DNA of 64,000 nt, taken from the NCBI GenBank assembly GCA_965112735.1, contig OZ218963.1, forward strand, positions 2,294,001-2,358,000. Reading direction: 5' to 3'. The stretch's first letter is position 1, and each line of letters begins with the position of its first letter. Below, piece by piece: positions 23,736-63,519 of this stretch. The DNA comes from Phaeosaccion multiseriatum (Eukaryota > Protista > Ochrophyta, other classes). The notes under the pieces were generated by a model that was not told where the DNA came from, searched no databases, and saw nothing but the letters and a program-made list of their open reading frames with translations. Position numbers and translations under genes: made by a program.

Positions 23736-24258
23736 CAAACTCTGCCGCTATCATCTCTTTCACCATTGCAGCCATCTGCTGCAGTGCGTCTCCTTCTATC
23801 GCGGAACTCGCACTGACGGGCGCCGCTGCGTCCGCCTTTTCAACGCCTTCTTCTTCCGCGCCTGGCATGGCTAACGAAAGGACTCCCTTCTCTCTCACTT
23901 GAGTTATCCGACCAAAACTCGCCTGTGTGCCGTCGCCGACTACTCGTAGAACCAGCTAGCTGTGAAGTGTCGCGACAGCTGTCGTGTTGCGATATCTCCT
24001 CTACGATGACAGGGACAAGCTAGAGTAGTGTCAACTCGTGTATTAATAATACCTACTGAGAGATGCGTTCAAGGAAGTGATGGCCGTGGCCATACATGAA
24101 TATCGATATCCACATCGATATTGTACGTCGATATAGTGCTCAGTCACAACTGGCGATGCTCATCACAACACCTGGGGCTAAGTTCCCCGGGGCGGTGAGA
24201 CATTACTTTTAGACAACCATAGATGGCACTTAAGGGTGTAATATATTTTAACACCTGG

Positions 24259-26276
24259 AGGGTGTCGATGATGTGGTGGTGGCTCAGTGGTTGGAGCAAC
24301 TCTTGTCCATGTGGAGCAGTCACTCGTTGCTGAAGCAGGCCGGTGTGGAGACGGAGCTGAACGCAGCACTGCAGTTGTTTCTCACCATTCGGCGGCTACT
24401 GTGGCAGTGTCGTGCCCTGCGGGCGGAGGTGGGAGGGTTGGCAGGTGGTGAATGTGTGCAGCAGCAGAGGCGGCGGGCGCAAGCAGCAGTGGCACGGGCC
24501 AAATTCTACCAGGCGCAGCTGCCCCAGCACATGCACGCAATGACTATCGGTGATGAAGGTTGGACAGAAGCGCAGCGGTGGGGCTTGGTGGTGGTGTTGA
24601 AGCAGCGAGTAGCGGCCTTCTGCGTGGATGGGAGCGATTACGGCCGCACAGATTCGGGCCGGTTTGGGTTTCCGTTGCTGGACCCGAAGCAGCCGCCAAT
24701 TCGGAGTGCGGCACGGCGCTACCCTCCTCCGGTCCGGCGCGGTATTGAGATTGAGTTGAACAAGATGTTAGCAGCAGAGATCATCCGGCCCAGCACAGCA
24801 GCCTGGGCCACTCCACTCATGGCCGTGTTGAAGACGGACGAGCACGGCAACACCAAGTGCCACGAGGACGGCACTCCGATCGTGCGGATGACGTGTGACC
24901 TGTCGCAGCTCAATGACGCGTGCCGCACGGAGGCGCCCGCCATGCCAGTGGTGGATGATTTGCTGGCGGAAATGCAGGGGTCTACGGTCTTTTCGGTGAT
25001 GGACATCATGTCTGGCTACTTCAATGTGCCCATGGCCACCACGGAGGATGAGGACATCTCTACATTTGTCTGCCACAGTGGCACGTACGCCTGGAGAGTC
25101 ATGCCACAAGGAGCGAAGAATGCACCCGCCACGTTCGTACGCCTTATGAACACGGTGTTGCAGGGCCTACAGGCATTCGTGGCGTGCTTCGTGGACGACA
25201 TTGCAGTTTTCTCCGCCACGGTGGATCCAGCACATTGGCCAGTTAGACCAAGTTCTCGGCAGGATGGTGCAGCACAAGCTCAAGCTGGCGCCGAGCAAGG
25301 TGGTGTTGGGGGCATCTCAGGTGCGCTTCTGTGGGCATTTGGTGGATAGTGAGGGGGTGCGGGCCGATCCAGCCAAGTATGCAGCAGTTCGAGCGCTGGC
25401 CAAGCCCACTGCGCAGTCAGGCAATCAGGTGCGACAGGTCAGGCGCTTTGTAGGCATGCTCAGCTACTTCCGCAAATTCATTCCGGCGTTTGCCATGAAG
25501 GTGCGGCCGCTCAATGAGCTCTTGCGCAAAGGGGTGGATGTGCGGTCAGCGTGGGGGCCGAGGCACGACGCGGCGTGGGAGGGGCTCATCGAGGACCTGC
25601 TCCGCTCGCCCGCGTTGGCCTTCCCTCACTATGGCTCGGAATCGGTGTTCACGCTCAGCACCGACGCTTCAGCAGACGGGTTAGGGGGTGTGCTGTCGCA
25701 GCGGGATGCCGAGGGGGTGGAGCGAGTCGTGACGTTCATCAGTCGTGCCACTACCCCCACGGAGGCTCGGCTAGGCAGTACGGAGCTCGAGCTCTTGGCG
25801 GTGGTTTGGTGTGTGCGCAAGTTGAGCATGTACATTTGCCACCATCCCTGCACGGTGGTGACGGACCACCAACCATTGCTGTGGCTGGCGACGCACAAGG
25901 ACACCAACTCCAAGCTCTTTCGGTGGTATGAACGGCTCTCTGCTCATCATCTCAAGTTTGTCCACAAACCGGGGCGGGAGCTTGTGGTGCCTGACTGCTT
26001 GTCACGCGACCCCTTGCCTGTGACTGAGTGGTGTGATGCGGTGGGAGTGGAGGTGGCGTTGGTGGATGTGGTGGGTGACACCCTCGCGTTAGGGTGGGAG
26101 GATCCGGTGGAAGGTGCGGTGCTGCGGTTTGCTGCCGCGGCGCAGCAGTTGCAAGGGGAGGCGGTGGCGGCTCAGTCAGTGCCTATGGAGGGACTCTCGT
26201 CGGTCACGGCGAGACAGCAGGCGTCGGCAGGTTTGGAGGCGCTGTGCGTGGACAGTGTGGCGGTCGAGGCGCCAGG
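24259..26276 (+). pseudogene. Element B reverse transcriptase and RNase H
   Basis: MDIMSGYFNV, MPQGAKNAP, FVDD, TDASADGLG, TDHQPL; +1 frameshift near 25228 relative to the paralog at 52840. Confidence 0.92.
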
Positions 26277-29200
26277 TGTTGCGATGTCTCTCTGCGCAAG
26301 TAGATACGTAAGCTCTTGTGCGTGTCAACTAATGTATTGTTCTTAACAGAACGCCATAAAAGTAGTACAGGGCCAAAGCCCCATGAGCCGAAGATCCCAG
26401 TGACGCATGTAACCAATATTGGGCATCCCACAGACCCCAATAAAGATCATATCACAACACCCTCCTTGGATCGAGACTCACTCTTTCCTAAACAGACACT
26501 CCTAAGATAGCAAGTAAAACGCATGTAAAACCTCGCTACCCTATTACCTAATCGCTAATCACTAACCCAAGCTATCCCAAGACTAACCCAAGCTAAAATA
26601 AAACCCAAACTACTTCAGCATCTTCGAAACCAAGTACTTGTGTACCTGTGGAGTCAAAGCCTTGGTCATGATGTCCCCAAGCTGCTCCTTCGTGTTCCCA
26701 TACTGAAACCTTACGTGCCCGTGCTGCACGTGATACTGCAGAAAATGATACCGAATGTCAGTGTGACGCGTGCGCTTGGAGCTCGCATTGCCATTGGCCA
26801 GCTGGATGCACCCCTGATTGTCCTTTGTACATCATCGTCTCCTCCAAAACCGTCTTCGGAAAGAGAAACTCCAAAAGACCTCGATGAAAGAGCACCTCCT
26901 TCGTGCACTCCGCTGCTGCCATATACTCACTCTCCATGGAGCACATTGCAATGACCTTGAACATCACTGCCTTGTGTGCAATTGGCCCGCCGCCAAGCAT
27001 GAGTACGAACCCCCCAGAGCTACGACGCTTGTCCACGTCCCCAGCCCAATTTGCGTCAGCGTAAGCCTCCAAAGCAAGACCCGCCTTTCGATCAAATTCA
27101 ATCCCCAAATCAAATGTACCCCTAATATACCCTGTCAAATGCATCAATGCCTTCCAGTGCTCCGGTCCCGGTCGCTGCATAAAACGAGCAAGCTCTCGCA
27201 CAGCATAAGACGTGTCTGGTCGCACAAAGTTGGCTGCCCACATCAAAGAACACACAAGACACGAGTACAACTTGTCAGACATAAACTCAATGTCTTCCAA
27301 ACCGTTGGCCTCCATTGTCTTAGACAAATGCACTCCCGGCTCCACTGGAGAGCCGTAAATTGGCCCCTCCAACTCGCCAGGTCGCTCCAAAGAACGACGC
27401 AGATACCCTCCAACCGAAAGCCGAAGAATACCCTGCTCCCGCTGATAATTCACCTCCAAACCCAGAAAGTGATCAGCCCGAGGACTGCGCTTCAAAGCAA
27501 ATTGCCCGTCTATCGCCGCGTAGGTACGGTCGATCAAATCTCCCGCTCCAGCCCCACACAGGTCATCCGCGTAAACAACTAACATGCCACACAAAATCTC
27601 CTCCTCCGTGTAGTAAGCAAACAAACACGGATCAATGTCACTCTGCACCCAGCCCATGCGTAACAGAAACTCTACCAGAGTCTGATTCCAACGCCTCGGT
27701 GACTGATGCAAACCATACAAGCTCCTCAAGAGCCTCAGCACAAGCCCACGCCCAAGCAAGTTATTTGGCGCAGAAACATACACTTCCTCCCCCTCCTCCA
27801 GAGGAGCGAACAGAAATGCAGTCTCTACATCAGCAATTTGCAAATCCCAATCATTGTGGCAAGCAATCGCAAAGAAAAGTTTCAATGTCGACCCACCCAC
27901 AACCGGAGCAAACGTATCCCAAAAGTCTTTGCCCCGCACCTGATGATGACCCCCCACCACCAGCCTCATCTTGAATTTATCCACAGTCCCATCAGGTTTT
28001 ACCTTGAGCTTGGATATCCAATGAGTAGGCAAGACGTGCATTCAGTCGGTCCGCGGGACTACCTCCCAGACCTTGCCCCTCCAAGCTGTTCCACTCACTG
28101 TGGAGAGCCTCGTTCCACTCCTCGGCGAACTCGCCGTTGAGCGCCTCGTTGATGCTCTTGTGCTCAAACCCGCCCGGCTTCTTCATAAGCCGAGTCAATT
28201 TCTCCTCGCAAATGCTATGTCGCTCACAATCATGCTAGCGGCCATCACCGACGAACCCACCCGGCTATCACACAGTCAGCCTGTTCGTCTTCAATGCCAC
28301 TTGCCTCTAAGCTCTTCCACAAATGCTCACAAGTCTTCGCTGGTGACCCATACACATGTCCACCCAAGACTTCATGCCACTCGAACGTAGCACCCATATC
28401 ATACCCCCTCTACAGGAACACTCAAAATCCAGTCCCCCTCTTCTGTGCACAACTTGCTCACCCTTGGTCCTGCTTCCGCGTTGACCTCTCCCATACAAAT
28501 CTTGCTCGCACGTAACCCTCATGCCACGCTGACCGCTCCCATACTTCCCTGTAGGTAGCGCACGCCAGTCCGTCTCCTGGGCGCCTCTGTCGCCCTCCCT
28601 GGCTGTCTCATACATCCAAAAACGACTGGCCTGCATAGGATCCAGGTTCTGCTCTGCCTTGCTCTGCTCTGCCTTGCTCTGCTCTGTCTCCTCTGCTCTG
28701 CTTTGCTCCGCTCTGGCTGCTCTTCCTGGTGCTGTTCTTGTTGTACTGTACGCTGCCTTCTCTTGTGTCTCTGCTGGCTCTGCCTGCTGCCGCTCGCGCT
28801 GTGCGGCTGGCTCTGCCTGTCTGCTGTCTTTGCCCCTCTCGGGAGTGGGTCCGTCCCTGCACGACGCTGCATATACTCTCCCGCCCGGCAGCGGGGTGTC
28901 CAATGCTGCCTGCTGTGTCACGGTAGACTTTCTCGTCGGTGCCACTGCCTCTTCCGGCTCTGCACGCTCTGGTTGCTGCTTTGCCTCTTCCGGCTCTGCA
29001 CACTCTGGTTGCTGCTCTGCCTCTTCCGGCTCTGCACACTCTGGTTGCTGCTCTGCCTCTTCCGGCTCTGCACGCTCTGGTTGCTGCTCTGCCTCTTCCG
29101 GCTCTGCACGCAACCCTCTCTCTTCATTAGTAAGGGGCCCTCCCTCACCATTAGGACTGATCTTACGTGTATCGACCGACACTTCCGTTTCACCATCCGT

Positions 29201-30161
29201 CCCTTCTTCTTCCGGCTCCGGCATACCATTTTCTCGTATGCCCAGCCCAAGACTACTAACGTAGCCTTCGATGTGGGACGCACCCTCATCACCGGGACAG
29301 GTCTCACGTGTGTCAGAAGACACATCCGTTCCACCATCCGCCCCCACTGTTTGGACATAAGAATTGTCCTGTGCCGCATCTTCTGCCGTGGGCACTCTCT
29401 CGTCATCCGACAGAATGTCTAAGGCGCCTTGCATGCCAATAAAGGCGCGCAGATCGGCCTTGTACTGCCAGAACTCTACTAACGTAGAGCCCTCTTTCAG
29501 CTCAGAAGAAAAGGTTTGCACTTTTGACTTGTAGCTCAAACAAATCAGAGAACCGCTGCTACCGCTGCTGCCCCCATCCACGCTGTTTCCCCTTTCCTCT
29601 ACCGTGCCGCCAATACCTGACGCACTTTCTTGGCTTTCGGCTGCTAACGCAACAGAACCGCCTGCTTCGGAACTTGTGCCCAACTGGGCTTCCATCATCT
29701 GCATAAGCCTTGCAATCTGCTGCTCCTGCTTCTGCACTGTGCGAAGCAATACCTGAGAATCTAACGATTCGCTGCTTGCTCCTTGACTAGAGGTTACATC
29801 AACCTCTTCGTCATCGTCCCCTTTCTGCTCTGTCGTGCTAGCATGTCCCCCAGACATGGGTACCGCAAGACAGGACTACGCCTTCTTCTGTTGAATTACA
29901 CTCACTTCGTTTTCTGCTGTCGCCGAACAAATAAATTGCAGAACCAGCTAGCTGTGAAGATGTTCGCGACAATTGTCGTGTTGCGATGTCTCTCTGCGCA
30001 AGTAGATACGTAAGCTCTTGTGCGTGTCAACTAATGTATTGTTCTTAACAGAACGCCATAAAAGTAGTACAGGGCCAAAGCCCCATGAGCCGAAGATCCC
30101 AGTGACGCATGTAACCAATATTGGGCATCCCACAGACCCCAATAAAGATCATATCACAACA
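26277..30161 (-). mobile_element. Element D: Ty1/copia deletion derivative retaining RT-RNase H but lacking PR and IN
   Basis: 183-bp LTRs 26277-26459 and 29979-30161, TSD CCAGG, PPT at 26460-26467; RT LYGLHQSPR, YADD; RH YADANWA; gag N-terminus in ORF 28307-29857. Confidence 0.92.
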
Positions 30162-30166
30162 CCAGG

Positions 30167-31283
30167 CGGCTTCGGGTCGGCTCGGCTGCAGCACGTGGAG
30201 CAGATGCGGCAATGTGGCTGGGCTCCAGTGACCCTGTCCCACATCAACGAGAAGAAACGGGTGATAGAGGAGTGGTCTCAGCTGCCGCTGTTTCTCAGCC
30301 ACGTGCCAGCAGCGCGGTGCACGTACATACGCACGGAGGAGCAGGTGTGGGACATGCGAGCGGCACTGCGGGAGGCGACAGTGGTGGCCATGGACTCGGA
30401 GTGGGCTATACGCACTCCTCCTCGGCCGGCGTCTCTGCTGCAATTGGGTGTTCAGTATAGCGGCGTCGCCAATTCGGAGCGTGATTGTGGGTTCTGGGTG
30501 GATTTGGACAGTTTGAGTGGCAATGGTGGTATGGAGGCGCTGGCGGCGGTGCTGAGTGAGCTGTGGGGCGACGGGGGGATTATGAAGCTGGCGCATCACT
30601 GGAGTCACGACCAGCGTGCCCTAGGGAAGTGGCCGGCGTTGGCGCCGCATGTGTGGACCATCGCCAACTTGGTCGACACGACGCATTTATTCAAGGAGGT
30701 GTGGCCTGAGCACTGCCGTCCCATTGGCTTAGCAGACCTGGTTAGTATGTTCCTGCAGCGTTTTATGAGCAAGGAGGAGCAGAAGACGGATTGGACTCAG
30801 CGGGAGCTCACTGCGGCCCAGCTCAGCTATGCCTTCGACGATGTGGCCGCATTACTACAGTTGTTGCCGAAGATGCGGGCTTGTGCAGTTCCGGTGCCGT
30901 CTGCGATGGAAGTGAGCGCGGTGGATAGCGGGGGGGCGGGTGTGACGCGTGCTGAGATGCGCGCAGGACAGTTCGTCTCTGCCGGGGTGGGGTATTGGGC
31001 CGATCGGGAGCACGCCAGTCCGCTCTTCATTTTCTCAGCGACCGCTAAGTCAGTGGAGATGATCGACCTGATCCTTCTTTCTTACCGACATCCCCAGTGG
31101 ACCTGGACGGAGCTCATGGACGCAGTGGAGCAGTTCAGGGCGCGCTATCGGCCGGCCGCGGCGCGGAGGCGTGGCAAGCTGTCACTACCTCGAGCGGTTA
31201 TGATTGAGAAGACGTGGAGTGCCATCGCCGCAGATACGGGCGGCTTCTACACCATGGTGACCCCCACAGAGGCCCAGCAGTAG
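30167..31283 (+). CDS. DEDDy 3'-5' exonuclease domain (RNase D/WRN/Mut-7-like) within element B pol
   Basis: ExoI VAMDSEW, LLQLG, ExoII HHWSHD, GLADLV, ExoIII TDWTQRELTAAQLSYAFDD; in frame with RNase H across the element D TSD. Confidence 0.85.
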
Positions 31284-32221
31284 TGGCAAACCCAAGGTGT
31301 GGCGTGGGACATCCCTGCCGCCGTCGAGGCCGCGGGCGTGGTGGGTGCATCGACGGTGGAGGCGGAGCGCACACCGCCTGCGGCCCCAGCAGACGCCACA
31401 GCCGGCGGCGGTGACGGTGCGGGTGGTGCAGGCGGCGGAGGAGGGGTTGAAGGCGGCGGCAGCGGCGGCGGCGGAGGTGGAGGAGGAGGAGGAGGAGGAG
31501 GAGGAGGAGGAGGAGGAGGAGGAGGAGGAGGCGGAGGAGGAGGAGGCGGCGGACTCACAGTTGGCGGCTCGGCCACGGGGGTGGAGGGACGAGAGGCTGG
31601 AGCGACTCCAGCGGCTGACACCGATGCCCATGCGGCTGCGGCGAGCGAGGCCGCAAGGCAGGCTGCTACGCGGCAATTTGGGTGGTCCCTCCCTGGTGTT
31701 CCGGCAGTGGGTGAGCAGTCGTGCGCAGCCCGCATATTGCATGGGGCTCGGACTTACCAGCCCGCGTGGTGGGTGAAGGCGCAGCAGCAGGACGCTGAGT
31801 TGGAGGGGTGGCGTCAGAAGGTCTTGGCAGCCTCCCCGGGCGAGGGGGTGTTCGATGCGGGCGGGGGGGAGTTCTCTCTCGATGGCGATGGCGTCCTTCG
31901 CCGCAAGTGGGCCCCCGGGGGGCGACGGTGGCGGGTAGAGCGAACGAGGTTGCAGCTCTGCGTCCCCAAGGCGCTCAGGCCGGCCCTACTGCATGCCACG
32001 CACGGCGATGCGGTCTCAGGCGGCCATCACGGGCCAGGGCGGATGCTGGATGCGCTGCAGGAGCGAGTGTGGTGGCCCTCCATGAACGGGCATGCGCTGT
32101 ACTGGGCCCGTTCATGTCTTGCGTGCCAGACACGCAAGACACCACGGAGGCGGCCTCCACAGGTTCCGCTCTCGTCCATATCACCGGCGGCTGTGAATGG
32201 GCCATGGGCGGTTATGGGTGC

Positions 32222-33684
32222 TGTGGAGTCGTGCACTGAAAGGATGACTACCAATAGCAATAGACCCTACCTGCACATAGCAGGAGGTCAGTCGCTATCC
32301 ACCAGAGGTGGAACACTCGTGAGAAAACGAAAGGACGAGAGATGAAGTAATATTTTAGGAGATGGAAAGAACTAAAAGGAAACTGAAACTGAACGAAGAA
32401 ACTGAAACTATGAACTGACGACATTTGTGAGCATACCTCCACAGTCCCCCCTTTGAAAGCATGTGTGCATACGCAGACATGATAAGGAAAGAGAAAGAGA
32501 TGAACACAAATAGGAGGAAAGGAAGTAAGGAAAAGAGGGAAATCCACACAGACTGGCTACACCGACTTGGGAACAGAACAGATGGAGGGAAAAGCTGCCT
32601 CACACAAGGGGGAGGGAAAAAGCGGCCACACAAACAGTCCAGAAACACCAGAGAGTAGAGAGAATTAGCCCTAGCTACACCGACTTGGGAACAGAACAGA
32701 TGGAGGGAAAAGCTGCCTCACACAAGGGGGAGGGAAAAAGCGGCCTCACAAACAGTCTAGAAACACCAGAGGGTAGGGAGAATTATTTCAGGGCACATTG
32801 GTACTCAGAAGGTATAGGAAAGAGTCCGAGGGAAACAGAAGAAGATTAGAAGTGAGGAGAGTAACGGTCACGGAGAAAGGTGACAGTACGTTCCGACGCC
32901 TGACGGGGAGGGCCGGTGGCGCCGTCTTTGATGTGCTGCGTCGCTGCTGCCTTACCAAGGGCCTCTTGGATATTAATGCCGAGCTCCTTCAGGGTGGCGC
33001 GGCCCACGGTAACCAACTTGGTCATGTCGTTATCCGTGATGGCATAGCTGATCTTGGGCACCAAGAGAGGGCCCTGGAAGGTGTGAAGAATGAGGTCCAA
33101 AGGTGGAGTACGCCGCTTGTAGGAAAACATGTTGGGGCTTGAGGCCGGCAGCGAGGCCTCCGCTGATTGCAGAAGCTGTGCCTTCTACCCATTCGTCCGC
33201 ACTCTCGTTGTAGACCACGGCGAGCTGCCCACATTTATCCAGCGCCGAAAAGAGCTGCACAATCTGCTGCTGGCATCGATCCACTGCGGCCGCTCTCTGA
33301 CTGGGATCGGCCAAAAAAGGCTGGATGTAGACCTCGATGCTGGAAGAGCCTACCGCGGGTGGTGTACAGCCTACCACCGGGTGTTGTAGTGGCGAGACGG
33401 ACATTGGTCGCCGCTGAAATTGGAAAGTGTATGAAATGTACTATCCGGTAATAACTAGTTATTGTGGAGTCGTGCACTGAAAGGATGACTACCAATAGCA
33501 ATAGACCCTACCTGCACATAGCAGGAGGTCAGTCGCTATCCACCAGAGGTGGAACACTCGTGAGAAAACGAAAGGACGAGAGATGAAGTAATATTTTAGG
33601 AGATGGAAAGAACTAAAAGGAAACTGAAACTGAACGAAGAAACTGAATCTATGAACTGACGACATTTGTGAGCATACCTCCACA
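32222..33684 (-). mobile_element. Element G1: 1463-bp non-autonomous LTR element (gypsy deletion derivative)
   Basis: 222-bp LTRs 32222-32443 and 33463-33684, TSD GTGC, PPT at 32444-32455, protease-tail-like remnant TVGRATLKELGINI. Confidence 0.92.
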
Positions 33685-33969
33685 GTGCTGACGTGGCAGG
33701 ACCTTTCCCCATGGCCATGGGGGGGGAGGAGTACATTTTGGTGTTTCAAGATTGGTTCACCAAATGGACAGTGGTGGTACCATTGTGCGCCAAGGACTAT
33801 ACAGCGGAGGGCATTGCTCGGGCATTCGTGCGGCACGTAGTGACGGTGCTGGGGGCGCCCAAGGTGCTGGTCAGTGACCAAGGGTCGCAGTTCACGAGCA
33901 CGCTCATGGCCGATGTGCTGCGCGTACTCCAGACATCACAAGTCTTCACTACGCCGATGCATCAGCAAG

Positions 33970-34694
33970 TGTTAGAAGTCGTACTTTTGCTAGACTGATA
34001 CCTCCCGGTCTGAATTCAGAGGGCAGGTATCAGTCTAGCAAAAGTACGACTTCTAACAAGGCTAGTTGTGAGTTCGAACCTTAGCTGTCGCTTGTGAAAA
34101 AGCGTATTTTTCGGCGAAAACTGTTACCAGCTTGCTGGCCCATGATGCTGATTCTCAGACTGCGAGTTACTTCTCTCCACTATGTGCGGTGGGGGGGGGG
34201 GGGTTCGTCTTCTAGCAACGGTCTTGTTAGAAGTCGTACTTTTGCTAGACTGATACCTCCCGGTCTGAATTCAGAGGGCAGGTATCAGTCTAGCAAAAGT
34301 ACGACTTCTAACATCTCCACTATGTGCGGTGGGGGGGGGGGTTCGTCTTCTAGCAACGGTCTTGCTAGAAGTCGTACTTTTGCTAGACTAATACCTCCCG
34401 GTCTGAATTCAGAGGGCAGGTATCAATACGACTTCTAACAAGGCTAGTTGTGAGTTCGAACCTTAGCTGTCGCTTGTGAAAAAGCGTATTTTTCGGCGAA
34501 AACTGTTACCAGCTTGCTGGCCCATGATGCTGATTCTCAGACTGCGAGTTACTTCTCTCCACTATGTGCGGTGGGGGGGGGGGGTTCGTCTTCTAGCAAC
34601 GGTCTTGTTAGAAGTCGTACTTTTGCTAGACTGATACCTACCCTCTGAATTCAGACCGGGAGGTACCAGTCTAGCAAAAGTACGACTTCTAACA
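33970..34694. mobile_element. Element K1: concatemer of the hairpin-terminal family K (four hairpins)
   Basis: Hairpins 33970-34058, 34225-34313, 34362-34440 (partly deleted), 34606-34694; single TSD CAAG. Confidence 0.9.
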
Positions 34695-35458
34695 CAAGCC
34701 AATGGGCAAGTGGAGCGCTTCATGGCCACGATGAAGGACATGCTGGCGACGACAGTGGAGGCCCAGATGCAGCAGTGGCCTGAGTATGTGTAAAGAGTCA
34801 CGTTGCTCTCCACCTAGGATAGGAGTAGCCGCATGGATAAGGTAATAGCAACCCCAAAGCCAGCCTGGCAGCCAGCCTTGTCTCTATTAGCTTTATCCGT
34901 GAGCCATCCTAAACGACCAACCTGCTGGGAGGTGAGTGAGAAACGGGCCACGCACCGTTTCTCACCGTATTTGCCTGGGCCTGGGCCATTGACATAATAC
35001 TGACTTTCAACATCCCCGTCAGCCATCCCTGCACTTCTAACATCCCCCTGCACTAAACTATTGCGTGTCCCCACGCAACTCAAAGCGGGTTCGCCTACTA
35101 AGCTAAGCTCGACTTGTAGCAAAAGCCTCCATGTTGCTTCCAATAAAAACGGATGAGAAATATGCAAAACTCACCCAGGTGTGTGCGACCGCTCCTCCAA
35201 CACACACCCTCCTGTATTGGTGAGAAAACCCCACGACTCAAACTCACCCACACAGGCTCACGGATGAGAACATGTTGGGATATCTCCCTCCTGGAGACTG
35301 GTGTCGTACTTGCACGAGTGTGGGAAAGCGTCTTATTAGCTACATAACACTAAAAGAAGAAGTGAACGGACTTGTACCAGCGATATGAGATCGATATCTA
35401 GTGTCGACATCGATTTATCTCAACACACCTCCTCGCCTGGTACTGTCCATTCCGCTAA

Positions 35459-37096
35459 CTACGCCCTAAAACCCATCATCTTTTCACGTAAAGCTACAAG
35501 TACTGCCGGGGTCACATGCTTCGTCAAAAGGTCAGCCAGCTGCGCCTTCGAAGCCACGTACTCAAATGCAATAAGAGCCTCCTTCACTGCGTCTTGCAGA
35601 AAATGAAACCGAACATCAATGTGCTTCATCCTCCGTGTCGATGCATTGCTCTCTGCCAGCTTGATACACCCCATGTTGTCCTCAAAAACAACTGTCGCCT
35701 TCGACGAGTCATCAGGGAACAAGAAACTCAATACCTGCCTAATGTATAATATTTCCTTCACACAGTCACTGGCTGCCATGTACTCGCTCTCCAGCGAAGA
35801 CATCGCCACACTCAGCTGCAATCGCACACCCCAAGTGATAGCTGCACCTCCGTACATCAAAGCATAACCAATCGAACTCCTGCGAGTGTCAACACATGCA
35901 GCGTAATTCGCGTCTGCATATGCTTCCAAAACACACTCGCCCTTGCCAAACACCAAAGCACGATCCACAGTACCCTTCAGGTAGCCAAACACACGCATAG
36001 CCTGCTTCCAATGCTCAGGGCCGGGGTTCTTCATATACCGCGACAACTCTCGAACAGCATAGGCAATATCAGGCCTTGTCCAGTTTGAGATCCACATCAA
36101 AACGCCCACCACACCGGGGTAGTCCTTGTCAGTCATAAAAGCTACATCAGCTGCAGACGATGGCTCCATACTCTTGCTGAGTGCTGTGCCAGACACACCG
36201 GGTGTCGAGTAAACTCGATCAGACTCCAAACCAAACTTCACTATCATCTTCTTGATGTAGTGCTCCAATGTCAATGTGACAGTGCCTACGCTCCGGTTGA
36301 ACACAACGCGCACTCCCAAAAACTGATCAACATTGGGCCCAAGTCTCTTCAACGAAAACTTGTTGTCCAGCTCTGTAAAGAGCCAGTCCACCACCTCCTG
36401 CTTTCCTCCGCAGGACAAATCATCAACAAATACAATGAGGATGCCAACAAGCTCCCCATTCTTCCACAAAACAAATAAACACGGCTCAGCGCCGCACTGT
36501 TGCCATCCAAGCTCAAGCAGAAACTTCACCAATGTCTGATACCAACGTCTCGGTGCCTGATGTAGACCATAGAGTGCCATCAGCAAGCGCATGACCTTGC
36601 CCTTCCGCAGAAAACCCGGAGGCGGTAACACATACACCACCTCATGCTCTTGCAGAGGCGCATGCAGAAAAGCTTGATCCACATCAGCAAACTCACACAC
36701 AAAACCAGACGTCTTCATCTTGTCAACCACCACAGCGAAGAACAAACGAACCACGGGCGCCGCAATCACTGGAGCAAAGCAATCAGAGAAATCAATTCCC
36801 TCCGTCTGAGTATGACCGCCAACCACCAAACGAGCCTTCAACTTGGTAACATTGTCGAGATGATCACTCTTCACCTTATAAACAAAGTGAGAGCGTACTG
36901 GTCGCACATCCAAAGGCTGATCCACCACTTCCCAAGAATTTCTTGCTTCAAGCCCCCCCCACTCACTCAGCATAGCCGCTGCCCACTCATCAGAAAACTT
37001 TCCAGTCAGAGCCTCATGCCGATTCTTTGGGGTAGGTACCTCAGACACCTTCGTACCTGGAGCTAACGACAGTAGCGCGTGCAAAGCCGCTGAATG
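35459..37096 (-). CDS. Element E reverse transcriptase-RNase H, in frame behind a TGA
   Basis: KARLVVGG, LYGLHQAPR, FVDD, YADANYA, EDNMGCI, KHIDVRFHF. Confidence 0.93.
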   Translation of the reverse strand, partial: HSAALHALLSLAPGTKVSEVPTPKNRHEALTGKFSDEWAAAMLSEWGGLEARNSWEVVDQPLDVRPVRSHFVYKVKSDHLDNVTKLKARLVVGGHTQTEGIDFSDCFAPVIAAPVVRLFFAVVVDKMKTSGFVCEFADVDQAFLHAPLQEHEVVYVLPPPGFLRKGKVMRLLMALYGLHQAPRRWYQTLVKFLLELGWQQCGAEPCLFVLWKNGELVGILIVFVDDLSCGGKQEVVDWLFTELDNKFSLKRLGPNVDQFLGVRVVFNRSVGTVTLTLEHYIKKMIVKFGLESDRVYSTPGVSGTALSKSMEPSSAADVAFMTDKDYPGVVGVLMWISNWTRPDIAYAVRELSRYMKNPGPEHWKQAMRVFGYLKGTVDRALVFGKGECVLEAYADANYAACVDTRRSSIGYALMYGGAAITWGVRLQLSVAMSSLESEYMAASDCVKEILYIRQVLSFLFPDDSSKATVVFEDNMGCIKLAESNASTRRMKHIDVRFHFLQDAVKEALIAFEYVASKAQLADLLTKHVTPAVLVALREKMMGFRA

Positions 37097-40000
37097 TCAG
37101 GTGTCACTCTTCTGCTGTGGTTTGGTCGAGCGTCGCGAGTGTCCACGACCGTACCCGCCAGATGACAAACTCTCCCAAAACACCTCCTTGTGGCCATGTT
37201 CCTGATCAGTCCAATCCCAACCAGGACGAGGCGCTGCGCTTTTCTCCTGCTGCTGGTGCTGAACGGATCCTTTGTCTTTGAGCTGCTGCTGTTGCTCTTT
37301 CTTCTGCTGCTGCTGCGTCACCTCCAAAGAGCTGCGCTGATGTCCTTGCTGCTGCTGAGTCTGCAACACACGCTGCTGTGCGTCTGGAAGACGCTCTCCA
37401 GTTTGCTCATGATCCCCCTCGTCCAAATCCAGCGCAGAAAAATCGAACAGATCGAATTTTGACACCGCGATTTCCGAATCCTCGATTTCCGTAACGTCTT
37501 TCTCCAAAGGGAACTCCGACGACGGCGCGGGCTCTTTCAGAGCAAAATTGGTCTCGCTGAAAAGCTGTCCATCGATCCCACGACGCTCAGGGAGTAGCCG
37601 AAAACTGCGACTGAGGATAACGCGCTCCGTCTTCGGATCGAAAAAGACCAGGCAGTCAATCGGATGATACTTGCTCCTCCCAAGGTAGATCACAGCTCTG
37701 CCACGCCCAGACTCGTAGTGCTTGATCGTGTGGGTGGGGCGCTGCTCCTTGATATAGGCCAGACAGCCGTACGGAGCGATGTTGCTGCAGTCCGGAGCAT
37801 GACCAGTGAGCACCTCATACCGTGACGGTTCGCCCCGCTTGCCGTTCAAGTTCAAAAACATAGAGGCATATCGAGCCCCAAAACACCACAGTTTCGGAAA
37901 CGCCTGATCCAAACCCGCCGCGTCAGAGACCACTGCTGCCTTCTGAGCCAGTGTGGCCAGTCTCTTCTCTATAGCTCCATTCTGCTCCGGGGTATAGGGA
38001 GAGGTGAACTTCCAATGAACGCCCTTGCTGGTCACAAAGGTAGCTGCCTGCTCCTGATTCAGCAGCTCGTTGCCGTTGTCAACTAGCAACTCCTCAAGCT
38101 GTGCACCAGTAGGCACTACCACCTCCGCCCAAAAACGCTGCAAGGCAAGGATGAAATGGCTCTTTTTCGTGGTAAAGTACACCCAGCCAACCTTGGAGGC
38201 CATATCCTGGAAGCCAAACACCCACTTGTACCCCCCATATGCCTCAAAACTCACCGGTTGGGCATCTGCTGCCACTACACGTAGCCCATCCGTTGGATCG
38301 ACAGGTCGAAGGGCCCGAGACACGTTGGCTCGGCGAGCATTGTTCCGCAGGCACGGCTCACACGAGCGCAGAGTCCCAGTGAGGTGAATGCCACGCTGCT
38401 TCGCTGTAAAGCGCAAATCTTGCTCAGCCTGGTGCCCGTTGGTGATATGGAACTGGTTGATGTCCTCCTTCGGTAACGCACGATGCCGCACACAGCCCAA
38501 CACATTGACCTGCATGAGCTCATCCTGACTGGCAATCACAGCAAGAGGGTCGTCTGGAGAGGACCCAAAGACCAGCTGATCGTTCTCATCATCTCCGTGT
38601 ACACCTCCCAAAGCCTGCTGCAAGTCGCTGAGCCGCAGCAAGTTGAACTTGGCCTGAGGGGCCACAACCACATCAATGCGCACCAGCCGCCGACCGCCGT
38701 TGCGGTCCTTCATCTCGAGCAGCAGCTCCCCGCGGGCAGTGACAGTGACATACCCTTCACCCGCAGTAGCTCGCATCTCGTTGATCCGCTCGATGTTTTG
38801 CACAGCCGTCATGTCGCTCGTAAGGTTACACGACGCTCCACTATCCACCACCCAGGTCTCTGAAGAGCCACTCGTCGGCGGTTCGGTGACGGACAGACAA
38901 ACACCGAGGAGAGAGCCCCAATTTACCTTGGTTGCTCGAGGCTCGCCCGAAGCAGGGGTGGTCATGACGGGTGCTGCAGAAGCGTTCTTGAGGCACCCCT
39001 TCAGAGTGGAGGGACCTCCACCTTTGCCGTCGCTGGCACTCGCAGGCTGCTCCTTCTGCTCCTTCGGCGGCGGATCCTTCTTCGGCTGCTCTGTGTTCTT
39101 GGGCTTCTTCTTCTCCGCAAACTTGGGGCACTGCTCGTCCGTAGAGATGTGGTCAGAGGAGTTACACGCAAAGCAGCGACGCCCATTGGGACACTTGAAG
39201 TGGGCGTGGTCTGTCAGGCCGCATTTAAAGCAGCGGTTGTGACGTCGACCGCCGCGAGGCCGGTCACCGCCCCCGTCCTTGCCACCATTGCCTCCCCTGG
39301 GGAAGGCAAGAATAGGGAGACTCGAAGAGCCACCCGCACCACCTTGCCGAATAGCCTCAGCTGCCGCTTCCTCTGTGGTCCAGAGGTCAGCCTTAAAGTC
39401 CGTGGGGTCCGTGATCCCTATTGCCACACGTCGCCAGGTCTCCTTGAAGTGGAAGAGCACGGAAGGGAGACGCTCCAAAAAATTGACGGTGACGGCGCCG
39501 ATGGTCATGACAATGCCGTACTCCTGAAGGAGCAGGCGGTACTCCAGCATCTCCTTGTAAAGCTGGGTAGGGGGGCGCTTATCCGAGATCCGCAGCTCCA
39601 AATACTCCTTCTGAAGACGATTCGCAGTCGAAGCTTCCCCTTTTCCTACCAGACGGTCCCGGGCATGGTTGAAAATGTCCTGCAGCGTCCCTCCATTGCG
39701 GGCAACGTCCTGCAGGGCCTGTTGAACATGCTTGCTGCCAAACGACTTAATGACCTTCTGCACCACCTGAGAGAAAAGGTAGCGCACGTTACTCAGGTTG
39801 TCATCAAGTTCCGCCAGGGCGGAGGGCGGCACCAACTCAGGCTCCTCCAGCATGAACCGAAGGCCCAAACTATCGAGCTCGGTGTGCCAACCTTCTTCGT
39901 GCTTCCGAAAGGCCAAAGCGGTGGGAGCCTCTCCTCGCAGCTCAAACTTAATTGCAGCCAAGGCCGTCTGACGCAGCTGGGCCCACTTGCCATGGGTATT

Positions 40001-40735
40001 GGCGTGCATCGTCGTGAGGTCAACCAACAACGGGTCAGGAACCTCCTCACTCTCGGATGAGTCGTCATCACTGCTGTCTGATGTGCCAGCTGCGGCAGCC
40101 GCTGCAGCCGCAGAGGATGCCCTCACTCTCCCTCGAGTAGCTGTCCCGCCAGCAATCTGCACAGTCTCTTCTTCAGTATCAAGTGCTGCGTGGAGGCCTG
40201 CACCATCGGTGGCCAAGTCTGGGGACAGGGCCACGGCCTCCTCCTCTTGTTCCTCTGCAGCGTCCAGGAAGCGCTCGTCGGCATCCCTCCTTTTGGGTGC
40301 CAACGCTGCTTGCACTGCTGCAATGGACGCTTCGTCCATCTCATTCAACTGTGACAACACTGACTTCACCGTGGGTCTACTGGCCACTGCAGCAGACCTA
40401 AGTCCAGACATGGCAGGCGTAAAAGCCCTGCCACCGCTCCCGCTACGAGCAGAGGTATCCACTGCTGCTGCCCGACTGGGGGAGTTTGTTACGGGCCCCA
40501 CCTGGGCACTACGCAACCCTCGTGTATGGAGTTCCTTGTAGTCAAGGCCAGGCCGCATCCGCAAGCCATAGCCGCTGCCGGACAAAGCTGAATCAACTCG
40601 AAGCTCCTCCTGCTGCCTTCTACTCAAAACCCCCTCCTGTCTCGTGCTCTCTTGGTCGCGGAGCCACCGCTCCTTGATCGCACGACGTGCCTTCTCCCTC
40701 GAAGCTCTAGACACTCGTCGGTCCGCCATACTCAA
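37097..40735 (-). CDS. Element E gag-protease-integrase polyprotein
   Basis: Zinc knuckles CFKCGLTDHAHFKC and CFACNSSDH, WVVDSGAS, H-H-C-C, DNGNE, YTPEQNGAIEK. Confidence 0.93.
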   Translation of the reverse strand: MSMADRRVSRASREKARRAIKERWLRDQESTRQEGVLSRRQQEELRVDSALSGSGYGLRMRPGLDYKELHTRGLRSAQVGPVTNSPSRAAAVDTSARSGSGGRAFTPAMSGLRSAAVASRPTVKSVLSQLNEMDEASIAAVQAALAPKRRDADERFLDAAEEQEEEAVALSPDLATDGAGLHAALDTEEETVQIAGGTATRGRVRASSAAAAAAAAGTSDSSDDDSSESEEVPDPLLVDLTTMHANTHGKWAQLRQTALAAIKFELRGEAPTALAFRKHEEGWHTELDSLGLRFMLEEPELVPPSALAELDDNLSNVRYLFSQVVQKVIKSFGSKHVQQALQDVARNGGTLQDIFNHARDRLVGKGEASTANRLQKEYLELRISDKRPPTQLYKEMLEYRLLLQEYGIVMTIGAVTVNFLERLPSVLFHFKETWRRVAIGITDPTDFKADLWTTEEAAAEAIRQGGAGGSSSLPILAFPRGGNGGKDGGGDRPRGGRRHNRCFKCGLTDHAHFKCPNGRRCFACNSSDHISTDEQCPKFAEKKKPKNTEQPKKDPPPKEQKEQPASASDGKGGGPSTLKGCLKNASAAPVMTTPASGEPRATKVNWGSLLGVCLSVTEPPTSGSSETWVVDSGASCNLTSDMTAVQNIERINEMRATAGEGYVTVTARGELLLEMKDRNGGRRLVRIDVVVAPQAKFNLLRLSDLQQALGGVHGDDENDQLVFGSSPDDPLAVIASQDELMQVNVLGCVRHRALPKEDINQFHITNGHQAEQDLRFTAKQRGIHLTGTLRSCEPCLRNNARRANVSRALRPVDPTDGLRVVAADAQPVSFEAYGGYKWVFGFQDMASKVGWVYFTTKKSHFILALQRFWAEVVVPTGAQLEELLVDNGNELLNQEQAATFVTSKGVHWKFTSPYTPEQNGAIEKRLATLAQKAAVVSDAAGLDQAFPKLWCFGARYASMFLNLNGKRGEPSRYEVLTGHAPDCSNIAPYGCLAYIKEQRPTHTIKHYESGRGRAVIYLGRSKYHPIDCLVFFDPKTERVILSRSFRLLPERRGIDGQLFSETNFALKEPAPSSEFPLEKDVTEIEDSEIAVSKFDLFDFSALDLDEGDHEQTGERLPDAQQRVLQTQQQQGHQRSSLEVTQQQQKKEQQQQLKDKGSVQHQQQEKSAAPRPGWDWTDQEHGHKEVFWESLSSGGYGRGHSRRSTKPQQKSDT

Positions 40736-41193
40736 TGCAGCGTGGCAGACGCACCAGTGCTAAGATCTACTCCGACCGTTTCAGCTCTCCGAACTCATCC
40801 CGTACTTTACGTTCACCTCTGCACTAATGCGCATTAGATTTCAACCGACAATTGTCGTGTTGGGATATCTCCCTCCTGGAGACTGGTGTCGTACTTGCAC
40901 GAGTGTGGGAAAGCGTCTTATTAGCTACATAACACTAAAAGAAGAAGTGAACGGACTTGTACCAGCGATATGAGATCGATATCTAGTGTCGACATCGATT
41001 TATCTCAACAGAACATCCCATGACTCAAACTCACCCGCGCAATTCTCTATCTCCACTCCTACTCGCCACCAGCGTTGCCAAAGCCGCGTTGCGCACCACT
41101 AATGCTGACTGCTCAAGTGTTTACTGGTGTGCCTACAAGGCACCCAGACAGTCCCTAAAGCAGCCTTGCGAGTATCCTTCTCTGTCTCCCGCC

Positions 41194-41840
41194 AAGCTCC
41201 GTGCAACAGCAACAGCCGCGCTGCTGCCACACTCGAAAGCCGTGCCCGCTGTAGGGCACCGCTCTCGGCAATTCTCTATCTCCACGGCCCACCAAGCTCC
41301 AGCAGCAATTTCCGTGCAACAGCAACATCCGTGCTGCTGCCACACTCGAAAGCCATGCCCGCTGTCTAAGGCACCACTCCCGGCAATTCTCTGTCTCCAC
41401 GGCCCACCAAGCTCCAGCAGCAATTTCCGTGCAACAGCAACATCCGTGCTGCTGCCACACTCGAAAGCCGTGCCCGCTGTAAGGCACCGCTCCCGGCAAT
41501 TCTCTATCTCCACGGCCCACCAAGCTCCAGCAGCAATTTCCGTGTAACAGCAACATCCGTGCTGCTGCCACACTCGAAAGCCATGCCCGCTGTAAGGCAC
41601 CGCTCCCGGCAATTCTCCATCTCCACTGCCCACCAAGCTCCAGCAGCAATTTCCGTGTAACAGCAACATCCGTGCTGCTGCCATACTCGAAAGCCATGCC
41701 CGCTGTAAGGCACCGCTCCCGGCAATTCTCCATCTCCACTGCCCACCAAGCTCCAGCAGCAATTTCCGTGCAACAGCAACATGTGTGCTGCTGCCACACT
41801 CGAAAGCCATGCCCGCTGTCTAAGGCACCACTCCCGGCAA
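41194..41840. repeat. Tandem array of about 5.7 units of 113-115 bp inside element H
   Basis: G(C/T)AACAGCAAC recurs at 41203, 41316, 41431, 41544, 41657, 41770. Confidence 0.9.
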
Positions 41841-42247
41841 ACTCAAAGCTACCGAGCTGCTGCCTGAGCCTCTTGGCCAAGGTCAGCTGCCTTCGGGATT
41901 CTTTGGGGTTGTAAAGAGTCACGTTGCTCTCCACCTAGGATAGGAGTAGCCGCATGGATAAGGTAATAGCAACCCCAAAGCCAGCCTGGCAGCCAGCCTT
42001 GTCTCTATTAGCTTTATCCGTGAGCCATCCTAAACGACCAACCTGCTGGGAGGTGAGTGAGAAACGGGCCACGCACCGTTTCTCACCGTATTTGCCTGGG
42101 CCTGGGCCATTGACATAATACTGACTTTCAACATATGTTCCCGCGCTCACGTACGCGTACAACTGCAGAGCTCACAAGACCACAGGCCTCTCCCCGTACT
42201 ACACTCTCTTCGGTCGACACCCCCCGATTCCACTTCAAGCGATGCTG

Positions 42248-42594
42248 TGTTAGAAGTCGTGCTTTTGCTAGACTGGTACCTACCCTCTGAATTCAGACCG
42301 GGAGGGTACCAGTCTAGCAAAAGCACGACTTCTAACAAGCCCATTGCTAGAAGTCGAACCCCCCCCCCCCACCGCACATAGTGGAGAGAAGTAACTCGCA
42401 GTCTGGGAATCAGACTAATGGGTGCAAGCCGGTACCAGTTTTCGCCGAAAAACACACTTTTTTCACAAGCTACAGCCAGGGTTCGAACTCGCAATGGGCT
42501 TGTTAGAAGTCGTGCTTTTGCTAGACTGTACCTACCCTCTGAATATTTTTATTCAGAGGGTAGGTACAGTCTAGCAAAAGCACGACTTCTAACA
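42248..42594. mobile_element. Element K2: unit-length hairpin-terminal element (347 bp)
   Basis: Hairpins 42248-42337 and 42501-42594, TSD GCTG; internal region inverted relative to K1. Confidence 0.92.
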
Positions 42595-43594
42595 GCTGCC
42601 TGCCCTCGAGGAGGACGGCTCGTTCGAGACGCCTTCGGCATGGGTGCACGAGCTGAGGGCGCGGATGGCAGCGGCGGCGCAGGTGGTGACGGGCAGGCGC
42701 GAGGAGTATCGCAGCAGGCTACAGCTCAAGAACCGTGAGCGTCGCTGGCCAGCGCCGATGCCTCCTGGCACTAAGGTGTGGTTGTACCGTCCAGGGGGGG
42801 CGGCGCAGGAGGAGGGTGAGGCCATGGAGGAGCAGAAGGCACTGACGCTCAAGGCGCTGAGTCATGCTTGGGACGGACCGTTCCAAGTCCTGGCTTGGCC
42901 CACACAGCAGGCCTTCCAGGCGCGACATGGTGGCATACTCAACGACGAGCACTACGCGGTGATGCGCCGTAGCACGGTGTATCTGGATGTGCCGAGGGTC
43001 AGAGGCGGGGGAGTGGAGTTCAAGCAAGGGGCGTACCATAGGGACCTCACCAAGCCGTTCGTTGATGGGGTGAGTGGCCAGCCGGAAGGACTACCAGATG
43101 GGTTCGCTCGATACCACATCCGGTACTGCTCAGCCCACTGGGGTACTAGTGCACTGCAGGAGAAGCGTAGCGTGACCGATGACGAGGTTGGGATAGGGCG
43201 GGCGCCCGAGCTGGTGCGGATAGTGAAGATGAGGTGGCGTAAGGCCACAGGGCAGCCCCTACGGCGTGAGTACTGTGTCCGTTGGGCTGTACGGGAGGGT
43301 GGCAGTTATCAGACGTGGGAGTGGGACGATTGGCTCTTGCGGCGCGGGGAGAGGGCGGCAATAGAGGCATTCGAGGACTCTTTGGCGCCAGGGGCGTTGG
43401 ACCCGAGCGTGCAGCGCAAGCGTGGGCAGCGGTCTAAACGAGAGCGCACCGTGCGCGCCATGTTGCACGAGAAGTGGGGGATGGGCATCGCTGCGGAGAC
43501 GGCGCAACATTTGGGGTTCTAGACCTTGCGGTGGTGGTGGTCGCAGAGACGGGATAGGCATTGGGGATGTTGGAAGGTTACGGGATAGGCATTG

Positions 43595-46500: not shown

Positions 46501-47813
46501 GACAGCGAGGACGAGGACCAGCCCTCGAGCAGCGGGAGCAGCAGCAGGAGCAGCAGCAGGAGCAGCAGCAGGAGCAGCAGCAGTAGCGCGAGCGGGGAGG
46601 TGGGGGCGGGACCAAGAGTGGAACCGTCACATGGAACACGAGATTAGAGGAGGCACAGCCAGCCCCACAGCAGCAACAGACATCACGCTGGGAACAGGTT
46701 CTCACCCGAGAGTTCGTGGAGAAGTTACAACTCGAAGGAGAAGGCCTGGAGCGACGTCAGCACGCCGAGCGGCAACAGAGGGAGCAGACGGCAAAGCAGC
46801 AACAGAGAGAGCAGCAGAAACAGCAAGTAGAGCAGCAAGAGCAGCAGCAGCAGCAGGCAGAGCAGCAACAGGCAGAGCAGCAGCAGGAAGAGCCAACGCA
46901 GCAGGCTGAGCCGCCAGAGAGAGGCAAACTCTGGACATACGAGGTGGCCAAAGATGGCGACAAGGGAGCCAAGGAGCACGACTGGGGCCACGATCCCAGC
47001 CTGGGCCGCACGCGTAGCGGCAAGCACTGACATGCTGTCTCCTCCATACTAGGCCCACTCTTTCTGATGCCAGGCCTAAAGGAGAGCGAGGTACCGATAC
47101 CGCGGTCTCTGGCCCAGGCTCAAGCAGGAGAGTACGCGGAGCAATGGACGGAGGCGTACTGGGCAGAGCTCAACGCGATCGAGCAACGCCAGGTATGGGA
47201 GGAGGTTGATTATCAAGAGGGGATGAATGTGCTGCATACAGTCATGCTATTCAGAGCAAAGGTGACTGGGGGACTTGTGGATAGGCTCAAGTGTCGATTT
47301 GTCGTGATGGGGAACGAGCAGATCGAGGGGGAGGATTACTTTGATACCTTTGCACCAGTGGTGGGGAGCTCGACGATGAAGATGTTCTTTGCTATCACGT
47401 GCCAGAAGAAGTGGGTATTGGAGTTTGCAGATGTGGAGACGGCTTTCCTGCATGCACCTCTGCATGAGGGGGAGTACGTGTACATTAGAGCACCAGAGGG
47501 CATGAGAAAGTTCGGGAAGGTGCTGAGGCTGTTGAAGAGTCTGTACGGTCTTCATCAGTCTCCCAAGAGGTGGAACGAGACAGTGGTGGCATTTCTACTC
47601 GCAATGGGGTGGGTACAGTGCCCAGTGGATCCGTGTCTGTTCGCCAGGTTCGAGGAGGGGGAGCTAATAGGGCTCATCATTCTATATGTAGACGACCTAG
47701 GAGGGTCAGGGGAGGGAAATCTCATTGACTGCACTTTCAAGGAGATTGACGAGCGTTTCAAGTTGAAGCGTTTGGGGTCGAATGTGGGGAAATTTCTGGG
47801 AGTTGAAGTGGGA
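43595..47813 (+). mobile_element. Element C2: Ty1/copia, 3'-truncated, with frameshifted gag-PR-IN and partial RT
   Basis: 5' LTR 43595-43780 (family of C1); gag 43894, two CCHC knuckles, ADSGS, SADNGSE, QNGLNE, RT to YVDD..FLGVEV, then directly the B 3' LTR. Confidence 0.9.
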
Positions 47814-61661: not shown

Positions 61662-61677
61662 AGGTTGATTGTGAGAA

Positions 61678-61870: not shown

Positions 61871-61876
61871 GGGTAG

Positions 61877-63475: not shown

Positions 63476-63519
63476 GCTAAGCTCAGATAACATCAAATTA
63501 TAGGGGAGGGGGGGGGGGG

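Follow-up and report, generated by a model that had tools for sequence, protein, structure and literature searches.

The described systems closest to the element analysed here are the miniature long terminal repeat (LTR) elements of the TRIM and SMART kinds. The SMART element FRetro129 of grasses is a 292-bp LTR element with 85-bp repeats (PMC3281118), the maize TRIM Wukong forms head-to-tail arrays of three to seven LTRs, most of which retain target duplications, and Cassandra forms arrays of about three LTRs (PMC4528315, PMC7215508). The Ginger DNA transposons are defined by terminal inverted repeats (TIRs) of 40–270 bp (Ginger1) or about 50–180 bp (Ginger2), TGTNR termini and 4-bp target duplications, and the combination of TGTNR ends with 4-bp duplications marks the gypsy/retroviral-type integrases, in LTR elements and Ginger alike (PMC2836005). 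We describe here an element, K, from a 64-kb stretch of the genome of Phaeosaccion multiseriatum (contig OZ218963.1, positions 2,294,001–2,358,000; hereafter the window, to whose numbering all coordinates refer and on which all counts of K rest). K is 344 bp long and non-coding, and there is about an even chance, in our estimate, that it is a non-autonomous, TRIM/SMART-like miniature LTR retroelement whose terminal repeats are palindromes. Its insertion by a gypsy-type (retroviral) integrase is well supported.

Two other systems form part of the background. Retrozymes are small non-coding LTR-type elements that carry hammerhead ribozymes, have 4-bp duplications and are mobilised by gypsy elements. 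Rolling-hairpin replication, as in parvoviruses, gives multimers that are joined head-to-head and tail-to-tail. This last system matters here because an earlier note on this DNA, made from the letters alone, had proposed that K replicates by fold-back priming and resolution of its hairpin termini and is then integrated by a retroviral-type integrase.

Anatomy of the K element

K is composed of a hairpin sequence, H, and a spacer, S. The H sequence is an 89-bp near-perfect palindrome, with two 34-nt reverse-complementary arms and an asymmetric 21-nt centre that is itself palindromic except close to its edges. Folded as single-stranded DNA it forms one hairpin (dG −42.1 kcal/mol, z = −16.8; none of 200 shuffles folds as well), and the blemishes in its stem are a 2-nt GG bulge and one unpaired base near the apex, with nothing else. 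The side on which the GG bulge lies is the basis of the distinction between the two orientations of the centre, which are called flip and flop. The window has 17 occurrences of the 34-nt arm at ≤3 mismatches (0 expected) and nine of the 20-nt centre (0.02 expected). Copies of H are separated by the 166-bp S, and both self-comparison of the window and separate searches with H and S give H-S-H, 344 bp, as the recurring unit. This unit is found four times in the window at 87–98% identity, and three K subfamilies that differ by about 10% can be recognised.

The two ends of S are partial inverted repeats of each other. Toward its 3′ end S carries a conserved run of 12–13 G residues, 21–24 nt upstream of the 3′ H, and seven nt inward from each H it has the H-terminus-like motif TGCTAGAAGTCG. 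S is most variable in its first 12 nt, next to the 5′ H, which differ between subfamilies. The palindrome reaches into S, most clearly in the K2 copy (described below), where 20 positions agree when the first 22 nt of S are set against the reverse complement of its last 24 nt (score 27 vs 10.1 ± 1.7 for shuffles); this match is weaker in the other subfamilies. The K2 stretch that runs from one H centre to the other forms, when folded, a panhandle of about 60 bp (dG −141.6 kcal/mol, z = −12).

Searches of K against Rfam gave sub-threshold likeness to generic microRNA hairpins only; no ribozyme, transfer RNA (tRNA) or RNA like that of a short interspersed element (SINE) was found. A tRNA or RNA polymerase III origin of S was also considered, given a B-box-like GAGTTCGAACC and a T5 run, but ARAGORN and Rfam show no tRNA-like fold there, and because the T5 stop would truncate an RNA polymerase III transcript the idea was dropped as speculation.

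The K1 array

K1 (33970–34694) lies between two copies of the 4-bp sequence CAAG (33966–33969 and 34695–34698) and is a multimer in the order H1 - S - H2 - S′ - H3 - S - H4. H1 (33970–34058, flip) forms its 5′ end and is followed by a 166-bp S (34059–34224), with G13 placed 24 nt before the 3′ end of that segment, and by H2 (34225–34313, flip), which is identical to H1 over 89/89 nt and closes the first H-S-H unit. S′ (34314–34362; period 138) is the last 49 bp of S alone. H3 (34363–34440) is again flip, with two substitutions in its left arm and an 11-nt deletion in its right arm, and the third S segment (34441–34605, 165 bp) is 99.4% identical to the first, differing in the length of the G run alone. 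In H4 (34606–34694) the centre is inverted (flop). All seven segments are annotated on the + strand, and the centres lie at 34004, 34259 and 34397 on that strand and at 34641 on the − strand. The earlier note had reported the 89-bp unit with its 34-bp arms and asymmetric centre, three like centres followed by an inverted one, and a single CAAG duplication around the whole, and in all of this it was accurate. It had also called K1 a concatemer of hairpins; there are indeed four H in a multimer, but S segments intervene, so that the unit is H-S-H and not the hairpin.

The three S segments all lie on the + strand, and the units are therefore head-to-tail. Their G runs measure 13, 11 and 12 nt. 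H4 is not a plain inversion of H1: it has two further differences, both of them variants known from other K subfamilies. Substitutions number 4/167 in H3 and H4 vs 0/254 in the identical H1/H2 pair and the full S pair (p = 0.024), and three of the four H3/H4 substitutions are states typical of other K subfamilies. The units of K1 are thus not clonal, and K1 is a mosaic. Between the outer hairpins, H1 and H4, 101 nt form an inverted repeat with 94% complementarity.

A nest of separate insertions was considered as the origin of K1 and rejected, since a matching 4-mer is absent at every internal junction. The single duplication around the multimer does not show, however, that the multimer was inserted whole, because unequal exchange between H copies after insertion of a monomer would leave identical flanks.

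Other K copies

K2 (42248–42594, − strand) belongs to a diverged subfamily and is a complete H-S-H monomer with 87% identity to K1, flanked by the target duplication GCTG (42244–42247 and 42595–42598). Its 3′ H (42248–42337) is flip relative to S, and its 5′ H (42501–42594) has a fully symmetrised centre and so a perfect 45-bp stem. The monomer at 61877–62189 (+ strand) is 98% identical to K1, is flanked by GTAG (61873–61876 and 62190–62193) and has both H in flip; its 5′ H has an internal deletion in the left arm but retains the terminal TGTTAG, and its 3′ H is of K2 type, which makes it a mosaic copy as well. A third subfamily (89% identical) is represented at 63155–63475 (− strand), where the 5′ H is truncated at 63475, both H are flip relative to S and the two H are identical over the 59/59 nt that they share. 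After an older, diverged H in flop (61571–61661) come about 15 nt similar to the beginning of S (together 61571–61676, + strand), and the remainder of this K is replaced by an unrelated 203-bp repeat. Finally, 51838–51882 (+ strand) is one arm plus half a centre and stops exactly at the centre of symmetry. With K1, these are the six loci of the earlier note; all of them exist, but that at 51838 is just half a hairpin. The H sequences at 62101–62189 and 63417–63475 are the opposite ends of the loci listed here as 61877 and 63155.

Two repeats that adjoin K copies may be described at this point. A block of about 900 bp (62604–63501) lies within 24-nt inverted repeats that are 96% complementary; it contains a foldback of about 380 bp made of 10–22-nt subrepeats (62626–63009) and a G20 run, and the truncated K at 63155–63475 abuts its right end. 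The 203-bp repeat is a TG...CA unit present three times (8266–8468, 47812–48008 and 61676–61871; 79–97% identical), for which a target duplication could not be recognised. Of its copies, one breaks a copia reverse transcriptase (RT), one is in a CAG-repeat region and one is beside the K fragment.

Orientation of the centre and behaviour of the palindrome

Orientation was scored relative to S, in about a dozen hairpins of one window, which make a small and non-independent sample. Among the ten that can be oriented, eight are flip (H1, H2, H3, the 3′ H of K2, and both H of 61877–62189 and of 63155–63475) and two are flop (H4 and the 61571 H); the symmetrised 5′ H of K2 and the half hairpin at 51838 have no assignable orientation. 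Against an expectation of 50:50 the 8:2 ratio has a one-sided p of 0.055, and terminal hairpins by themselves (2/9 flop) give p = 0.09, so that the counts alone do not reject an equal split. The centre is in direct-repeat orientation at both ends of the first K1 unit, of 61877–62189 and of 63155–63475. Since three diverged subfamilies all keep flip, the centre behaves as part of a direct, LTR-like repeat and not as a randomised terminus.

The arms show a second regularity. Two arm positions vary among subfamilies with the partner position changed as well, the pair being A-T in four or three copies and G-C in three, and 93% of arm cells are paired (these counts use the arm helix alone, the small apical helix being excluded). 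Subfamily variants are present in all four arms of a copy. Template switching has been documented to invert loops, to make imperfect stems perfect and to bring about simultaneous compensatory changes (Monttinen and Loytynoja 2022, PMC8794818). By analogy, the paired arm changes, the flops and the symmetrised and half hairpins of K suggest intrastrand template switching together with breakage of palindromes. The inverted centres of H4 and 61571, the symmetrised hairpin at 42501–42594 and the half hairpin at 51838 would then be sporadic inversions and other changes of the palindrome loop, arising through intrastrand template switching or arm-arm recombination and not through a hairpin-resolution step.

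Termini, target duplications and resident LTR elements

Complete K loci start with TGTTAG and end with CTAACA, and so belong to the TGTNR...YNACA type. All three of them have a clean 4-bp target duplication (CAAG at K1, GCTG at 42248–42594 and GTAG at 61877–62189), as the earlier note had said. For comparison we read the termini of every LTR pair in the window: elements with copia genes have 5-bp duplications (CCTGG, CCAGG, GAACA), and the gypsy element at 17957–23735 and the non-coding LTR elements have 4-bp duplications (CAAA, GTGC, AAGT, TATG, GGTG). The length of the K duplication agrees with the gypsy-type and non-coding group, not with the copia-type elements.

The sequence of the K terminus points to the same group. 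Each of the 1866 TGT-starting 20-mers outside K was matched position by position to the first 20 nt of K, and the three best (11/17) are the LTR starts at 53541, 57432 and 57688, all of one resident family. The next-best tier includes LTR ends of a sister family (34789–42133). The LTR start at 53541 has an 11-nt run identical to the K terminus at the same offset, and the LTR start of the 32222 family has the AGTCGTGC motif in common with K. This likeness is visible just in the position-anchored test; a blastn-short search of K against the K-masked window returned G runs only. The TGTNR ends, the 4-bp duplications and the likeness to resident LTR ends are the grounds for assigning insertion of K to a gypsy-type integrase, and they bear out the retroviral-type integration that had been proposed for it.

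The resident elements concerned are non-coding. That at 53541–57900 (+ strand) has the target duplication GGTG. The 1.46-kb element at 32222–33684 (+ strand; 222-bp LTRs, duplication GTGC) has a second copy at 55218–56680 (duplication AAGT). Between K1 and K2 lies the LTR element 34789–42133 (+ strand; identical 224-bp LTRs, duplication TATG), which shares its terminus group with the 53541 family and contains a nested copia-type element, 35273–41010, with the 5-bp duplication GAACA.

Some further features of these families were noted. The two 1.46-kb copies are 99.7% identical, have a 118-bp internal tandem repeat and are both inserted into other elements. The 5′ LTR of the 34789 and 53541 families is followed by 30 nt that finish with ACTTCTAACA (35013–35042, 53786–53815 and 57645–57674). 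These 10 nt also form the 3′ terminus of K, a hint of common origin or of a second integrase site. A tandem LTR pair 43 bp apart (57432–57900) is the 3′ end of the 53541–57900 element, and the spacer between its LTRs holds just the post-LTR (primer-site-like) and pre-LTR (TTTGGGG) segments. Inside 34789–42133 there is a 113-bp tandem repeat of 5.7 copies at 95% identity (41198–41840).

How K may be copied

If K is a miniature LTR element, its integrase would be supplied in trans by a resident LTR retrotransposon, acting as helper, and K probably passes through an RNA intermediate. The grounds for the latter are that its terminal repeats behave as direct repeats, that they are identical within young copies, that some copies are mosaic and that K is akin to true LTRs. 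The identical H pairs (H1 and H2, and those of the 63155 locus) are as expected of LTRs that are regenerated each cycle. The head-to-tail array of K1, with its several repeats, could have arisen by unequal H-H exchange or by template switching between K templates.

The palindromes may have a role in such a cycle. Because each H is palindromic, the sequence that follows the centre of the 5′ H is complementary to the sequence that precedes the centre of the 3′ H. A transcript that ran from centre to centre would fold into the panhandle noted above and so join both ends, and, speculatively, this could aid the strand transfers of reverse transcription where the element is too small for other signals. 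The terminal repeat of K would in that case be reduced to two integrase-recognition ends paired with each other. One may go further and suppose that the end repeats are regenerated arm from arm each cycle, by a fold-back step in complementary DNA (cDNA) synthesis or by a panhandle-guided strand transfer, with the palindrome as part of the copying mechanism. We think this improbable; it would explain the subfamily variants shared by four arms, the symmetrised hairpin and the occasional inverted centres and, if true, would be a replication strategy undescribed for LTR-type elements.

Several observations weigh against K as an LTR element. No primer-binding site was recognised beside the 5′ H, ARAGORN finds no tRNA gene in the window, and there is no tRNA-like Rfam match on either strand of K; the missing primer site counts weakly, because the other LTR elements of the window are also without a canonical TGG-type site. 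The polypurine-like G12–13 run stands 21–24 nt before the 3′ H and does not adjoin it. No promoter or poly(A) signal was identified in the 89-bp H. Within the window no coding partner has K-type termini, and the families that share its terminus (53541, 32222) are non-coding. Exact-pattern scans of viral and metagenome contigs with the H arm and the conserved S motif gave zero matches. The TIRs of about 110 nt that K possesses, measured end to end, are a DNA-transposon signature. To these must be added the size of the sample, about a dozen scored hairpins from one 64-kb window.

That signature raises the possibility, which we hold to be unlikely but which deserves attention, that K is a Ginger-like non-autonomous DNA transposon (a miniature inverted-repeat transposable element, MITE), moved by cut-and-paste by an integrase-derived transposase that recognises the arms. 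Any block with outward-facing arms, monomer or multimer, would then move whole, and the orientation of the centre would be irrelevant. The TIR length, TGTNR ends and 4-bp duplication of K all fall within the Ginger definition (PMC2836005), the long inverted repeat formed by H1 and H4 suits such a transposase, a multimer under one duplication is accounted for without an extra event, and neither a primer-binding site nor an adjoining polypurine tract was found in K. The targets, however, do not agree: CAAG, GCTG and GTAG match neither the CCGG/CCGT of Ginger1 nor the AT-rich (RTATAY) targets of Ginger2. In the open reading frames (ORFs) scanned, integrase domains occur only in pol genes of LTR retrotransposons, with RT present or adjacent, and no integrase-only gene was seen. 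The K termini resemble bona fide direct LTRs and not TIR elements, and, despite the inversions, three subfamilies keep the direct centre at both ends, which a transposase that reads the arms alone would not enforce. The sharing of subfamily variants by four arms would also need a homogenising step under cut-and-paste.

The fold-back priming and terminal resolution of the earlier note, as in parvoviruses and followed by retroviral-type integration, are in our judgement very unlikely. The H hairpins are real and very stable, their arms co-vary, both flops stand at element ends (H4 is the last hairpin in K1, and 61571 is a 5′ end), the hairpin at 42501–42594 looks like one arm copied from the other, and with two flops among nine terminal hairpins a 50:50 ratio is not formally rejected. 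But loop inversion, stem perfection and compensatory change are all explained by ordinary replication error (PMC8794818), and flip predominates in all three subfamilies. The structure of K1 argues in the same direction, because rolling-hairpin intermediates are head-to-head and tail-to-tail and the K1 units are head-to-tail, and because a replicative concatemer from one template should be clonal and K1 is not. No nicking or Rep-type domain was found in any of about 25 ORFs or ORF pieces scanned with Pfam, which cover part of the window, and the K arm and S motif patterns are without a match in viral contigs. This half of the proposal is not supported. It is less probable still that faulty assembly produced the K1 array or the orientation of H4. 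Errors are common in palindromes, tandem units and G homopolymers, and the variation of the G run among the S segments of K1 is typical of homopolymer error; against this stand the clean matching 4-bp flanks, the position of K1 within an otherwise colinear coding region, the specific differences carried by H3 and H4, which are not collapsed copies, and the independent flop at 61571.

Genomic surroundings

The eukaryotic DNA of the window is a nest of transposons, with genes of the gypsy type (RVT_1, RNase H, integrase) and of the copia type (RVT_2). Most of its LTR pairs are 100% identical, which indicates a young community of elements with very recent activity. K1 and K2 share a host, the pol gene of a gypsy-type LTR retrotransposon (24273–43522, + strand), and both sit in its integrase part. 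This pol gene encodes RT, RNase H, an exonuclease-like domain, an integrase zinc finger and an integrase core. Five elements, of which two are K, have inserted into it, and it is further broken by at least one frameshift and at least one in-frame stop. Its pieces were profile-searched separately: 31299–32221 matches the H2C2 integrase zinc finger and 33687–33968, directly left of K1, matches the rve core (E = 4.6e-9). The exonuclease-like domain, at 30321–30879, is a 3′-5′ exonuclease (Pfam DNA_pol_A_exo1, E = 5e-16) that follows the RNase H part and precedes the integrase zinc finger, whose frame it shares. We know of no other 3′-5′ exonuclease domain in the pol genes of LTR retrotransposons.

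The gypsy-type element at 17957–23735 has 236-bp LTRs that are 100% identical, a CAAA duplication and an uninterrupted pol ORF of 1256 aa; it is nested in a copia-type element, and the closest relative of its pol in the protein collection is 58% identical. The copia-type elements at 14840–24170, 26277–30161 and 35273–41010 have 5-bp duplications throughout, and beside one LTR, at the expected position of the primer site, they have a palindromic CGACA-NN-TGTCG in common. Self-priming was considered for the other LTR elements and rejected, the complementarity of post-LTR sequence to the LTR or to pre-LTR sequence being ≤7 nt. A methyltransferase-like protein encoded in the window has its best matches in the ochrophyte algae Tribonema and Chrysoparadoxa (44–49% identity), whereas a PP2C query gave no match.

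Significance

If it is a miniature LTR element, K is among the smallest LTR-type elements known (344 bp vs 292 bp for SMART), with a terminal repeat that has wholly collapsed into two integrase-recognition ends folded together. It would then be a natural minimal substrate from which the needs of a gypsy-type integrase and of the reverse transcription machinery might be read. In our literature searches we met no TRIM whose LTR is described as palindromic. K could also give rise to double-stranded RNA or small RNAs in its host, a eukaryote that is poorly sampled and probably an ochrophyte alga. With regard to the parvovirus-like reading, which is unsupported, the present result is a useful correction more than a discovery.

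Comparison with known systems

With parvovirus hairpins K has in common an imperfect terminal palindrome in which unpaired bases define flip and flop, a likeness that draws on established knowledge and not on a comparison of sequences. The K multimer differs in being head-to-tail, and the orientation of its centre is biased 8:2 and inherited within subfamilies. A nicking protein was not found in the ORFs scanned, and K has target duplications and TG...CA ends, which parvoviruses do not. Like retrozymes, K is small, non-coding and LTR-type with 4-bp duplications; unlike them, it has no match to the hammerhead or any other Rfam family. Ginger1 and Ginger2 (TDD) resemble K in their TGTNR ends, 4-bp duplications, long TIRs and gypsy-related integrase (PMC2836005), but the targets of K disagree with theirs, its asymmetric centres are direct and not inverted, its termini are like those of true LTRs, and no Ginger-type transposase was seen in the ORFs scanned. 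The template-switch mutations of hairpins are comparable in another sense, since the same three changes (loop inversion, stem perfection and compensatory change) occur among the K hairpins; they represent a mutational process described for RNA genes and not a family of elements, and they apply to K by analogy.

K differs from the TRIM and SMART elements in several ways. The terminal repeat of K is itself a near-perfect 89-nt palindrome and the ends of its internal region are inverted repeats; it is without a recognised tRNA-type primer site, with a purine run that does not adjoin the 3′ repeat; and its target duplication is 4 bp vs the 5 bp reported for those plant families. In other features they are alike. 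Both are non-coding and a few hundred bp long, with short direct terminal repeats (85 bp in SMART, 89 bp in K), TGT...ACA ends, a short target duplication and frequent head-to-tail arrays with at least three repeats, and TRIM and SMART elements depend on a resident autonomous element, as we propose for K (PMC3281118, PMC4528315, PMC7215508).

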